This document shows positions 1,803 to 29,415 of a stretch of 64,000 nt of DNA, in pieces. The stretch covers positions 1,736,001 to 1,800,000 of the forward strand of contig JAGIQG010000016.1 of assembly GCA_024679065.1 (NCBI GenBank), in the 5' to 3' direction. A program made the position numbers and the translations under genes. The stretch comes from Sphyrna mokarran (Eukaryota). How positions within the stretch are numbered: position 1 is the first letter of the stretch; each line of letters begins with the position of its first letter. The notes below the pieces were generated by a model. The model made no database searches. It saw nothing but the letters and a program-made list of their open reading frames with translations, and had not been told where the DNA came from.

Positions 1803-2084
1803 ACTGGCCTTGCAGTTCAATGTCCTCTGACCTGTTGCTCCCAATGTTATTGGCAGCTACGCAATAATATTTCCCGTAGTCCGTGTAGGAGACTGAGTGG
1901 AATTCCAGGGTTTGGCCTGAGTGCCACTGGTACTGATATCCTGGCTTGTACCATGTATACTGATTGACTGCTGGGTTACTGAAGAGGGCATCACACCTTA
2001 AAGAAACAAAGTCTCCTTCTTTCATTGTTTGAACGTTAGTTTTGCTGTTTATGGTCAGTGCGATGCTAATGTTCCGAGGTTTAT
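1803..2084 (-). CDS. Ig C2-set exon
   Basis: 282 nt, ttttcag|AT ... T|gtaagt. Encodes YKPRN...KEGDFVSLRC...SNPAVNQYTWYK...DYGKYYCVAANNIG. Confidence 0.93.
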
Positions 2085-2279
2085 CTGAAAATGCACAGAA
2101 TGGAGAAAATGAAATCCTTGTACCTGACAACACAAAAACAGGGCATTGGCACCAACCGGTTCATGTCAGAGTATATGTTCTGAACAAGTCTCCTACCAAT
2201 GTCCAACTCATCAATATACCATTTGACAACATGTCACCCTTGATCCACATGGGGAAATATGAGGGAGAGGAGAGCAAAA

Positions 2280-4400
2280 GCATAGTTTGTAAGTTTCAAA
2301 GGATGAGAAAGAGGGTTGGAGAGATTTCGAGAGGGAATTCCAGAGCTTTGGATTCCCCCAGGCTACTGAAGGCACGGCAACAACTGGTGGAGTGATGGGA
2401 ATTGGGGGATGCTCAAGAGAGCCGAATTACAGGAGTGCAGGGATCTCACAGAATTGTAGAGAGCTGGAGGAACTCACAGAGATTGGGAGGATTCGAAAGC
2501 CTGGAGGAGTGGGTGTAGGGGCTGGAGGAGGTTACAGAGATAGGGAGGGGGTGTAGGGGGCTGGAGGAGGTTACAGAGATAGGGAGGGGGTGTAGGGGGC
2601 TGGGGGAGGTTACAGAGATAGGGAGGGGGTGTAGGGGGCTGGAGGAGGTTACAGAGATAGGGAGGGGGTGTAGGGGGCTGGAGGAGGTTACAGAGATAGG
2701 AGGGGGTGTAGGGGGCTGGGAGGTTAGGTACAGAGATAGGGAGGGGGTGTAGGGCTGGAGGAGGTTACAGAGATAGGGAGGGTTGTAGGGGCTGAGGAGG
2801 TTACAGAGATAGGGAGGGTGTAGGGGGCTGGAGGAGGTTACAGAGATAGGGAGGGGTTGTAGGGGCTGGAGGAGGTTACAGAGATAGGGAGGGGGGTGTA
2901 GGGGCTGGAGGAGGTTACAGAGATAGGGGGAGGGTGTAGGGGCTGGAGGAGGTTCGAGAGATAGGGAGGGGGTGTAGGGGCTGGAGGAGGTTACAGAGAT
3001 AGGGAGGGGTGTAGGGGCTGGAGGAGGTTACAGAGATAGGGAGGGGGTGTAGGGGCTGGAGGAGGTTAGAGAGATAGGGAGGGGGTGTAGGGGCTGGAGG
3101 AGGTTACAGATATAGGGGGTGGTGTGGGGGCTGGAGGAGGTTACAGAGATAGGGGAGGGGGTGTAGGGGCTGGAGGAGGTTACAGAGATAGGGAGGGGGT
3201 GTAGGGGCTGGAGGAGGTTACAGAGATAGGGAGGGTTGTAGGGGCTGGAGGAGGTTACAGAGATAGGGAGGGTTGTAGGGGCTGGAGGAGGTTACAGAGA
3301 TAGGGAGGGTTGTAGGGGCTGGAGGAGGTTACAGAGATAGGGAGGGTTGTAGGGGCTGGAGGAGGTTACAGAGATAGGGAGGGTTGTAGGGGCTGGAGGA
3401 GGTTACAGAGATAGGGATGGTTGTAGGGGCTGGAGGAGGTTACAGAGATAGGGATGGGTGTAGGGGCTGGAGGAGGTTACAGAGATAGGGAGGGGTGTAG
3501 GGGCTTGGAGGAGGTTACAGAGATAGGGAGGGGGTGTAGGGGCTGGAGGATGTCATGCAGATATAGGGTGGAGGCTTTAGTGGTGGAAAAGGTACAGAGA
3601 TAGGGAGGTGGTGTAGGGGTTGGAGTAGGTTAGAGGGTGAGAGATAGGGAGGGGTGTGGTGGGCTGGAGTGAGGTACAGAGATAGGCAAAGGGTGTGTAG
3701 GACGGCTGGAGGAGGTTACAGAGATAGGGAGGGGTGTATAGGCGCTGGAGGAGGGTACAGAGATAGGGCTGGTGGTGTAGGGGCTGAGGAGGTTACAGAG
3801 CTAGGGAGGGGGTGTAGGGGCTGGAGGGTTACAGAGATAGGGAGGGGGTGTAGGGGCTGAGGAGGTTACAGAGATACGGGGGGTGGTAGGGGCTGGAGGA
3901 TGTCAAGAGATAGGGAAGGCTTTAGGCTGGAAAAGTTATACAGACTGATAGGGAGGTGAAGGTGGTTTTGGGGTTCGGGGCTGGAGGAGGTACAGAGATA
4001 TCGGGATGGGTGTAGGGGCTGGAGGAGGTTACGGAGATAGGGAGCGGGGTGTGTAGGGGTGGAGGAGGTTATCGAGATGGGAGGGGGTGTAGGGGGCTGG
4101 GAGGATGTAACAGAGATGGAGGGGGTTGTGGGGCTGGAGGAGTGTTACAGAGATAGGAGGGGGTGTAGGGGTGGAGGGAGGTAAGAGATGGGGAGGGGGT
4201 AGGGGTGGAGGATGTCACAGAGATAGGGAGGTTAGTGGCAGGAAAAGGGTACAGAGATAGGGAAGAGTTGGTGATAATTTGAAGACAGATATTGAAACTA
4301 TGAGGTCAGGTAGTTGTTGATGAAGAGCAAGTGTCGATGAGTGAGTTGACTGAGTAGAGGGGGAATGGGAGGAGAAGTTTTGGGGGGAGATTACAGAAAG
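2280..4400 (-). mobile_element. L2-like LINE 3' relic containing an expanded minisatellite
   Basis: Minus-strand RAFS..LG...LWNSL at about 2330-2380. The array unit translates PYLCNLLQP, like the L2 ORF2 C-terminus. Confidence 0.6.
2500..4262 (+). repeat. About 38-bp G-rich minisatellite (gggagggggtgtaggggctggaggaggttacagagata)n
   Basis: About 45 tandem units read directly. Short copies also at about 13920-14030 and 16125-16175. Confidence 0.95.
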
Positions 4401-4632
4401 AGATGGAAACCTTCACTCACCAGCAACAAATATAATTGTATCTGAAATCGGATTGGAATCAATCTAGAAGGAAGTTGTGGAGGTTCTGGGAAGAGGGACA
4501 GTTGCCGGGAGTGGGTTTGATTATTCAATGGGTCAAACATGCAGCGAATTCACAATGGGCTGAATGGCCTTGCATTGATGAGAATCAGCTTGGTGATCAG
4601 GTTAATGGAAGGACTGATTCTCAGATACTCAC

Positions 4633-4932
4633 ACTGGAGGTTTAGGCTCATCTCATTTTCCACTGACTTTCCAACCCGTTTAAACTGAGCTGTACATCTC
4701 ACAGTCCGATCCCGATCCTGAAATCTCGGGGTGAAAGTCACGCTGCTGGAATGAATCCAAACGTTATCCCTATAAGAATTCTTGGTCTCAGCTTGGTCAG
4801 TGGAGAATGGGCCGTCCCACAGGAAGACAACGATATCTTCAGGGCAGGTACTCTGAATAGAACAGGTCACTTTAGTAACTTGATCCTCCACGAGTGTCCC
4901 CATTGCATTGATCACTGGTTTCTCTGGGATAT
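4633..4932 (-). CDS. Ig C2-set exon (Siglec domain-2 type)
   Basis: 300 nt, ttccacag|AT ... T|gtgagt. Encodes DIPEKP...VTCSIQSTCP...W...SSVTFTPRFQDRDRTVRC, with the extra Cys present. Confidence 0.92.
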
Positions 4933-28800: not shown

Positions 28801-29082
28801 TTTAATATCCCACCCAGTCTAATCCCACTCTCCTCCCTCATCTCCCCCAAACCCTTTAATATCCACCCATCATCCCACTCTCTCCCTCATTCCCCCCACC
28901 CTTTAATATCCCACCCAGTCTAAGCCCACTCCCCCCTCATTCCCCACACCCTTTAATATCCCACCCAGTCTAAGCCACTCTCCCCCCTCATTCCCCACAC
29001 CCTTTAATATCCCACCCAGTCTAAGCCACTCTCCCCCCTCATTCCCCCGCACCCTTTAATATCCCACTCAGTCTAATTCCAC
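25854..29082 (+). repeat. 51-bp minisatellite (cactctccccctcactccccgcaccctttaatatcccacccagtctaatcc)n
   Basis: About 63 units, with 17-aa periodicity in the ORF track. Confidence 0.97.
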
Positions 29083-29115
29083 CGCACATAGGAGGTAAAT
29101 TAAACAGACACTTAC

Positions 29116-29161
29116 ACCAGGTATTTGACAGAAGCAGTAAGATGGAAATTAAAGCTCCCAT
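29116..29161 (-). CDS. Signal-peptide exon, MGALISILLLLSNTW (exon 29116-29171)
   Basis: Acceptor ttcttacag|tattcaagaaATG and donor T|gtaagt at 29115. The 46 coding nt end in phase 1 and join the next exon to give MGALISILLLLSNTWYVICQAW, a hydrophobic leader. Confidence 0.8.
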
Positions 29162-29415
29162 TTCTTGAATACTGTAAGAAATATGGAGATTATCAGTGGA
29201 AAAATTTACTCAGCAATTTCTGAATATTCCTCCTCACTGATTCTAATTATCCACCAATCAGATATTCCCGACCATCCCAGAAAGTTCCTTCGAGGGGATC
29301 AGGAGCCGCCATTTTGAATTGAGATGAGGAGAAAATCTCTCAGTCCAAAAGTTTGCAATCCTTGCAAAACGTTGACTCAGAAAGCTTTGAGAGGCCCTGA
29401 CACAGTTCACTAAGT

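Follow-up and report, generated by a model that had tools for sequence, protein, structure and literature searches.

Two Siglec-type V-set domains in a predicted CD22-like gene of the shark Sphyrna mokarran

Introduction

We analysed a 64,000-nucleotide stretch of genomic DNA from the shark Sphyrna mokarran (contig JAGIQG010000016.1, positions 1,736,001 to 1,800,000; hereafter the window), which likely holds the 5′ half of a single gene, an ortholog of the elasmobranch Siglecs named 'B-cell receptor CD22-like'. A leader exon and six immunoglobulin (Ig) exons of this gene encode, in the order V, C2, C2, V, C2, C2, two successive halves that each look like the domain 1-2-3 unit of a Siglec, judging from the matches of both V exons to Siglec V-sets and of the C2 exons behind them to Siglec domain 2. 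With its second V-set, at domain 4, the protein departs from the usual Siglec plan but stays within the family.

Reviews define Siglecs by one N-terminal V-set domain (available text of PMC12837193). The fish Siglec paper PMC7226832 deals with teleosts only, and the words 'shark' and 'cartilaginous' are absent from its accessible portions. Our full-text literature searches found no description of a CD22 or other Siglec with two V-sets in cartilaginous fish. The gene seems to be an ordinary ortholog of public database models, with a two-module layout that is present in databases and apparently undescribed in the papers searched. The novelty put forward by an initial annotation of this DNA, made from the letters alone, is accordingly weakened: no paper was found, but the layout already exists in public automated elasmobranch models and multi-V Siglecs are common (110 of 160 proteins, see below). 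What is gained is the recognition of a layout, not the discovery of a new gene.

Exon structure and domain identity

The gene lies on the minus strand. Its leader exon (29116..29161), coding for the signal peptide, opens at an ATG, holds 15 codons (MGALISILLLLSNTW) plus one base and ends in phase 1 at a GTAAGT donor; it matches the leader of the ortholog from Mustelus asterias (P0192; ...EPLISILLLLSNSW). The first module begins with the V1 exon (25395..25757, 363 nt, phase 1-1), a Siglec-type V-set with the motifs W, C-x4-C (GLCLVIPC), DCTL, YHFR and NYS. It is followed by the C2a exon (23196..23489, 294 nt), a domain-2-type C2 with the cysteine pair CSVKYLC, and by the C2b exon (16225..16485, 261 nt), the third Ig exon, whose GTAGGT donor opens a 5923-nt intron leading to V2. 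The second module comprises the internal V2 exon (9948..10301, 354 nt, phase 1-1), again a Siglec-type V-set, with W, C-x4-C (DSCVVIPC), NCTL, YYFR and KWS; the C2c exon (4633..4932, 300 nt), a domain-2-type C2 with the cysteine pair CSIQSTC; and the C2d exon (1803..2084, 282 nt), the sixth Ig exon, with a GTAAGT donor. Each of the six Ig exons has a length that is a multiple of three, a phase-1 start, a pyrimidine-rich AG acceptor and a GT donor (GTAAGT in four, GTAGGT in one and GTGAGT in one). The six split codons yield Y, D, Y, S, D and Y without a stop, the one between C2b and V2 being AGT (S). The stop-free series of a leader and six phase-1 Ig exons proposed initially was thereby recovered in full, all seven exons lying where they had been placed, with AG/GT borders, and every motif that had been listed is present in the translations.

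The window starts within the intron after C2d and the gene continues past it; for the seventh domain of P0192 (residues 643-735) the window contains no dedicated exon. Searches of the window by tblastn with the exons, the full Mustelus ortholog and five other Siglec-like proteins detected no further Siglec-like exon, and none, whether MAG-like or resembling another Siglec, occurs in 30420-64000. The promoter region is incomplete, since 100 consecutive N (an assembly gap or masked stretch) occupy 30320-30419, ~1.2 kb upstream of the leader exon.

The two halves align in register in blastp comparisons, with 36% identity between V1 and V2 (E 1e-19), 22% between C2a and C2c (E 4e-6) and 32% between C2b and C2d (E 3e-6), a likeness far above chance.

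Searches and fold prediction were run exon by exon, not on the spliced six-exon protein. In Pfam, V1 matched V-set (1.3e-10) and Ig_CD22 (PF24518; 5.4e-10) and V2 matched Ig_CD22 (PF24518; 1e-15) and V-set (2.8e-9), all above the curated cut-offs. The matches of C2d to Ig_3 (4.1e-13) and Ig_2 (2.8e-12) also exceeded the cut-off, and the C2-set and Ig matches of C2a, C2b and C2c all fell below it (C2a with C2-set_2, 9.7e-4; C2b with Ig_2, 3.6e-5). Against solved structures (HMMER), V1 matched domain 1 of sialoadhesin best (E 1.1e-13), followed by Siglec-5 (2.3e-11) and CD33 (1.9e-9), with CD22 at 0.0066-0.016. V2 matched MAG (5.9e-13), sialoadhesin (7.6e-13), Siglec-7 (3.1e-12), CD33 (4.2e-12) and CD22 (4.9e-9). 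An AlphaFold model of the V2 exon alone, built from a 17-row alignment (mean predicted local distance difference test score 78.8, predicted template modelling score 0.75), found the N-terminal domain (d1) of sialoadhesin as its best Foldseek match (template modelling score 0.84). Among the matches listed, about 40 rows reaching down to rank 50, all were Siglec or PILR V-sets, led by sialoadhesin, Siglec-8, Siglec-7, MAG, Siglec-10, CD33, Siglec-15, Siglec-5 and PILR.

Both V exons thus encode a Siglec-type V-set, and both domains carry the essential F-strand Arg (R97 in sialoadhesin, R120 in CD22), together with the A- and G-strand aromatics (W and W in V2, W and Y in V1). In the HMMER alignments, W2 of sialoadhesin pairs with W in V1 and V2, R97 with the Arg of YHFR (V1) and of YYFR (V2), and W106 with W in V2 and Y in V1. 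At the residue level the Siglec cysteine pattern is complete, with the intrasheet Cys of the V-set, an extra Cys and its partner Cys in the next C2 domain. The matches of C2c to solved structures are weak (E 0.002-0.04) and solely to domain 2 of Siglecs, namely CD33 (0.002), Siglec-5 (0.0028), MAG (0.005) and Siglec-10, and its cysteine pair aligns with both cysteines of CD33 domain 2. C2a weakly matches domain 2 of MAG (E 0.023), with both Cys aligned, and of CD22 (E 0.47-0.95). Two claims of the initial annotation are borne out here: that two Siglec-type V-sets are present with Arg and flanking aromatics, since Siglec V-sets are the top solved matches and the residues align to sialoadhesin, and that each V is followed by a C2 with the partner Cys, given the pairing of C2c with CD33 and of C2a with MAG and the invariance of these cysteines described below. 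A single N-terminal lectin V-set, as in the usual Siglec plan, is not what this gene encodes.

Orthologous models in sharks and rays

Searched exhaustively by HMMER, the V2 exon matched 947 proteins at E <=0.001 and 12 of them at E <=1e-30. The V2-like stretch corresponds to residues ~320-450 of proteins of 836-1282 aa that also have an N-terminal V. These came from Carcharodon, Chiloscyllium, Heterodontus, Pristis, Pristiophorus and Rhinoraja, and all bear the source name 'B-cell receptor CD22-like' except Pristis P0007. Further models, found in a second search, come from Cetorhinus, Mustelus asterias, Scyliorhinus torazame, S. canicula, Rhincodon, Hemiscyllium and two Mobula species. The six window exons map onto the CD22-like models in order and without overlap, as their first six Ig domains. 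All six domains are present in eleven shark and ray species, which answers the comparison of architectures across cartilaginous fish suggested initially, and partial models exist in four more (Scyliorhinus canicula, Pristiophorus, Rhinoraja and Amblyraja).

The closest ortholog among the proteins returned is P0192 of Mustelus asterias, with 68-80% identity per exon: 75% for V1 (residues 26-144), 70% for C2a (146-242), 74% for C2b (244-329), 80% for V2 (331-445), 68% for C2c (448-546) and 80% for C2d (548-640). Identity per exon is 45-59% to Carcharodon and 36-50% to Pristis. All six split-codon residues equal the residues at the domain borders of P0192, including the Ser between C2b and V2. 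The models of Mustelus asterias (P0192), Carcharodon carcharias (XP_041037097.1, P0001), Heterodontus francisci (XP_067874681.1) and Pristis pectinata (XP_051901442.1) share the V, C2, C2, V, C2, C2 start at matching positions. They differ from the window copy in that the latter was not among the proteins returned and represents the first half of the gene only; the models themselves are automated and uncharacterised.

Past these six domains the ortholog models have further C2-type domains, then a membrane span and a tail. In P0192 and P0001 this tail aligns lengthwise with tarsier CD22 (P0208), with DYENV and four further tyrosine motifs in common, in colinear alignments (E 4e-7 and 4e-8) that include the last Ig domain and the membrane span. 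From the length of the orthologs (1282-1288 aa) and the position of the membrane span, and not from a direct count, we estimate about thirteen Ig domains in their ectodomain.

Two proteins deserve a separate mention. P0007 of Pristis pectinata ('myelin-associated glycoprotein-like', 836 aa) and P0194 of Rhincodon typus ('sialoadhesin-like', 947 aa) have the CD22-like V-C2-C2-V-C2(-C2) start and then diverge, and in the tree described below the third V of P0194 groups with a shark MAG/SMP-like V. Both could be true paralogs, or the models could be chimeras of a CD22-like gene and its MAG-like neighbour; CD22 and MAG adjoin in mammals.

One gene from leader to sixth Ig domain

Both halves very probably belong to one gene, because the orthologs are colinear, the split codons give the Mustelus residues and no membrane-span or leader exon lies between the halves. 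We infer that all six Ig exons are spliced into one mRNA in this species. Siglec genes often occur in tandem, and two neighbours, one with V1-C2a-C2b and the other with V2-C2c-C2d, might have been misjoined here and by annotation pipelines elsewhere. The orthologous models are all automated predictions, some public ones look chimeric (Rhincodon P0194, for instance, with its MAG/SMP-like third V), and neither a run recorded as RNA in the V2-exon run search nor a short protein across the junction came to light.

The C2b-V2 intron, however, makes such a misjoining very improbable. Hydropathy scans at thresholds of 1.9 and 1.5 found no membrane-span-grade stretch in it, the maximum over 19 residues being 1.81 as against 2.76-3.61 in the membrane span of P0192. 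An independent leader exon for V2, named at the outset as a sign of two genes, was looked for in this intron; no convincing ATG-leader-GT exon was found, and blastn detected nothing that resembles the real leader region. This would leave a V1-C2a-C2b gene unanchored and a V2 gene lacking a signal peptide. The intron consists largely of fragments of long interspersed nuclear elements (LINEs). The donor and acceptor on its two sides fit in phase 1, the residue of the split codon is that of Mustelus, and the C2b-V2 join is modelled in the eleven species with all six domains. On these grounds the proposal that the six exons form one gene is upheld as very probable. Two leader-like candidates in the intron, at 14038 and 12584, were rejected for their poor donors and low hydrophobicity.

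A single gene might still use its modules alternatively, with main products of one V each and the two-V form a minor one. As all Ig exons are phase 1-1, skipping V1-C2a-C2b or V2-C2c-C2d keeps the frame, and the symmetric phases permit it; some models lack single domains (Rhinoraja C2a, Pristiophorus P0010 C2c), and mammalian CD22 has an isoform without two Ig domains. We consider this arrangement quite improbable. All listed isoforms of Carcharodon (4) and Heterodontus (2) retain both V domains at the same places, as do all five members of the Pristis CD22-like cluster and the Mobula rows P0197-P0199, and the models without V1 begin inside V1, which marks them as truncated models and not as skipped forms.

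Decay of the gene in this species, with the intact exons as a remnant, would agree with introns swollen by minisatellites and LINE copies and with a 3′ half that lies outside the window. It is extremely improbable in view of seven open exons with canonical splice sites, 68-80% identity to Mustelus and the retention of all key residues.

Age and conservation of the two V domains

A tree of 60 V domains separates the shark and ray sequences into a V1 clade (support 100/98) and a V2 clade (99/97), both of which include a batoid subclade. Because both clades hold sharks and rays, the V1/V2 duplication, on this tree, predates the shark-ray split. A search with the V2 region only yielded 6 matches from 20 candidates, all of them sharks, and is too insensitive to speak on chimaeras.

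The residues typical of a Siglec lectin site are kept almost throughout. The F-strand Arg is found in 13/14 V1 rows and 17/17 V2 rows, the exception being the Pristis paralog P0007, with Gln in V1. The A-strand Trp is present in all 14 V1 rows and in 16 of the 17 V2 rows, and the G-strand position is aromatic everywhere (V1 14/14, with Tyr in 12 and Phe in 2; V2 17/17, always Trp). No cysteine of V1, V2, C2a or C2c varies, the pair of C2a being present in 15/15 rows and that of C2c in 17/17. Over the twelve rows with all six domains, mean pairwise identity is highest in V2 (55.6%), followed by C2d (50.1), V1 (48.6), C2a (47.0), C2c (46.5) and C2b (40.0), and V2 also has the most invariant columns (32/117). 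The conservation of residues and identities across shark and ray rows indicates that both halves are maintained, and the internal V no less strongly than the V at the tip. The old duplication with two maintained halves that the initial annotation had proposed is in line with V1 and V2 clades that span sharks and rays at 36% identity between V1 and V2.

The two V domains differ at the E-strand cysteine, where an N-C-T/S sequon stands in 17/17 V2 rows versus D-C-T/S/G in 14/14 V1 rows. Tarsier CD22 has NCTL at the place aligned with the V2 sequon, and the asparagine of the NCTL sequon at the E-strand cysteine is presumably CD22 N101. The glycan at CD22 N101 is needed for expression and conserved in fish, according to the accessible portions of PMC7226832.

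By score, V2 is the more CD22-like of the two V domains, since tarsier CD22 gives 46.2 bits with V2 versus 38.1 bits with V1; V2 shares with it 32% identity (E 5e-11), the NCTL sequon, DSGQ, the Arg and KW. In the tree, V1 and V2 lie outside the sialoadhesin clade, and V1, V2, sialoadhesin and mammalian CD22 meet in one fork without a settled order. An approximately unbiased (AU) test does not reject a sister grouping of V1 and V2 (p 0.537). With the deep branching unsettled, gene fusion and internal duplication are both compatible with the data. A phylogeny of V1 and V2 against known Siglecs, suggested initially, has given well-supported V1 and V2 clades that share this fork with mammalian CD22.

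A proposed two-site receptor

We propose that the mature protein opens with two tandem V-C2-C2 modules (domains 1-3 and 4-6) and, by homology with the ortholog models, would extend past the window through about seven additional C2-type Ig domains and a membrane span into a CD22-type tail with tyrosine motifs. The conserved contact residues suggest that V1 and V2 would each bind sialic acid, giving a two-sited receptor; two sites are likely, given the complete set of contact residues and the separate domain-2 partner of each V. V1 would stand at the tip of the rod and V2 three domains lower, on its side. The binding face of Siglecs lies on the side of the V domain and not at its tip, so that an internal V could stay accessible, and in the proposed rod the face of V2 would stay open. 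By analogy with CD22, the protein may act as an inhibitory co-receptor in which phosphorylated tail tyrosines, in ITIMs (inhibitory motifs of the immunoreceptor tyrosine-based type), recruit phosphatases and dampen signals of the B-cell receptor, and binding of sialylated ligands would set the position of the receptor on the cell.

Several observations weigh against this reading of one CD22-like gene with two lectin sites. The orthologous proteins are all automated gene models that may have a bias from homology-driven prediction in common, and several of them are incomplete or joined in odd ways (P0196, P0159, P0010, P0013, P0194 and P0007). The membrane span and the tail of this gene fall outside the window. 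The V2-exon search of sequencing runs returned four small runs from one study, each with 0.07 of the 30 sampled words and none recorded as RNA, and the search for short database proteins across the C2b-V2 junction found none, its 44 candidates giving one unrelated teleost match. The resemblance of C2a and C2c to solved domain-2 structures is weak (E 0.002 to 0.95). In the internal V2, just four residues separate the ligand-contact Trp of the A strand from the attachment to the domain before it, and Heterodontus V2 has Lys at the position of this Trp. Finally, AU tests reject neither a grouping of CD22 with V2 (p 0.23) nor one with V1 (p 0.248).

Some of these points would also suit a gene in which both V domains are present and only one is a lectin, the other keeping its fold as a spacer or as a protein-binding domain, for example in self-association. 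Binding at both sites rests on conserved residues, the A strand of V2 is tied to C2b, V1 evolves faster and has lost its Arg in one Pristis paralog (P0007, Gln), and the loss of sugar binding by a Siglec V-set has a precedent in human Siglec-XII (available text of PMC6288428). Set against this, almost every row of either V domain, in sharks as well as rays, retains the Arg, both aromatics and all cysteines, a pattern that is hard to explain without a ligand site in each, and the internal V2 is the most conserved domain of all. We therefore regard a single lectin site as unlikely and retain the two-sited receptor as our working model. The bivalent or dual-specificity lectin put forward in the initial annotation is a prediction from conserved residues.

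Within the two-sited model, a tip V for ligands on other cells and an internal V for ligands on the same cell would fit a V1 that evolves faster and a V2 that is more strongly conserved. A wider proposal, which we offer as a tentative possibility, is that shark and ray CD22 is an obligate two-site lectin, with V1 at the tip for ligands of other cells or pathogens and V2 inside the rod for ligands of the same cell; that this layout is older than the shark-ray split; that the single-V CD22 of tetrapods is a reduced form; and that repetition of V cassettes has been a general, recurrent route to multivalent Siglecs in non-mammalian vertebrates.

CD22 biology has largely been framed as a competition of same-cell and other-cell ligands for a single site, and two conserved, differently evolving lectin-type units at fixed heights of one rod would offer a natural test of that contest. 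Judging from this layout, the B-cell Siglec of the ancestor may have been multivalent, and a view of Siglec architecture taken from mammals may be too narrow.

Repeats in the introns and the rest of the window

Minisatellite arrays fill the introns of the gene, at 25853-29082, 23602-24504, 24906-25347, 16593-16852, 2506-4263, 4971-6220 and 6314-9697, with another array at 29416-30038. A 51-nt unit in 64.5 copies covers almost the entire intron between leader and V1. Further intron minisatellites have units of 52 nt (17 copies), 37 nt (46 copies) and 33 nt (29 copies), besides an AG-rich 14-nt unit repeated 225 times. The 33-nt and 44-nt units reappear as repetitive open reading frames (ORFs) at ~41.1-42.1, 56.5-57.3 and 63.4-63.8 kb.

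A reverse-transcriptase ORF of 545 codons (RVT_1, E 5e-38) lies at 10525-12162 on the minus strand, which is that of the gene, ~220 nt upstream of the V2 acceptor. The LINE family to which it belongs is also represented by many shorter pieces at 14.1-15.6, 17.5-22.3, 32.8-33.2, 43.8-47.3 and 49.2-50.9 kb.

Comparison with known Siglecs

Mammalian CD22 has one V-set and six C2 domains, seven Ig domains in all. The shark gene resembles it (solved structures 5VKJ/5VL3; tarsier P0208) in having a Siglec V-set with the Arg and, on our reading, a long rod of Ig domains; DYENV and ITIM-like tyrosines are a further likeness of the ortholog tails, not seen for the window gene itself. The single V-set of CD22 stands at the tip and is followed by C2-set domains (available text of PMC12837193), whereas the shark gene has two, at domains 1 and 4. 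The orthologs, with 1230-1288 aa and two V-sets, accordingly depart from an ectodomain of one V-set plus six C2 domains.

Siglec-12 (Siglec-XII) of primates also combines two V-set domains in one Siglec, a piece of background in the initial annotation that stands in the accessible part of PMC6288428. There, Ig1 is a V-set and the first C2-set domain is Ig3, so that the two V-sets (Ig1 and Ig2) are adjacent; in the shark gene two C2 exons lie between them and each V has its own domain-2-type partner. Human Siglec-XII has lost the essential Arg through R122C, which the same portion of that paper counts under Ig1, whereas the Arg of both V domains is conserved in the shark gene.

Sialoadhesin (Siglec-1; 1QFO/1URL) ranks first or close to first among the solved matches of both V exons. 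It differs by its single V-set, the sialoadhesins returned by our searches measuring 1482-1733 aa, and it has no inhibitory tail.

Repeated V-sets are frequent in Siglec-like proteins outside mammals. With a hidden Markov model (HMM) built from V1 and V2 rows, 110 of 160 proteins had at least two Siglec-type V domains, with 2 to 10 per protein; the 160 were the 150 best matches of the V2 search plus 10 cluster mates, a ranking that favours multi-domain proteins. The named examples come from teleosts, bichir, turtle, lizard, catshark and stingray. Like the shark gene, 'sialoadhesin-like' proteins of Paramormyrops and Engraulis, uncharacterised proteins of Perca and Ictalurus, 'CD22-like' proteins of Polypterus and Pelodiscus, 'Siglec-8' of Scyliorhinus and 'Siglec-12' of Hypanus repeat a Siglec-type V within one predicted protein. 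Near-identical V-C2 units recur three to ten times in Pelodiscus sinensis P0012, Paramormyrops P0006 and Engraulis P0004, with two identical V domains in Paramormyrops; these arrays are either very young exon cassettes or artefacts of assembly or annotation. In these multi-V proteins the V copies of one protein cluster together, which points to recent, repeated and lineage-specific duplications, whereas the V1/V2 pair of sharks and rays is old, divergent (36% identity) and fixed in position.

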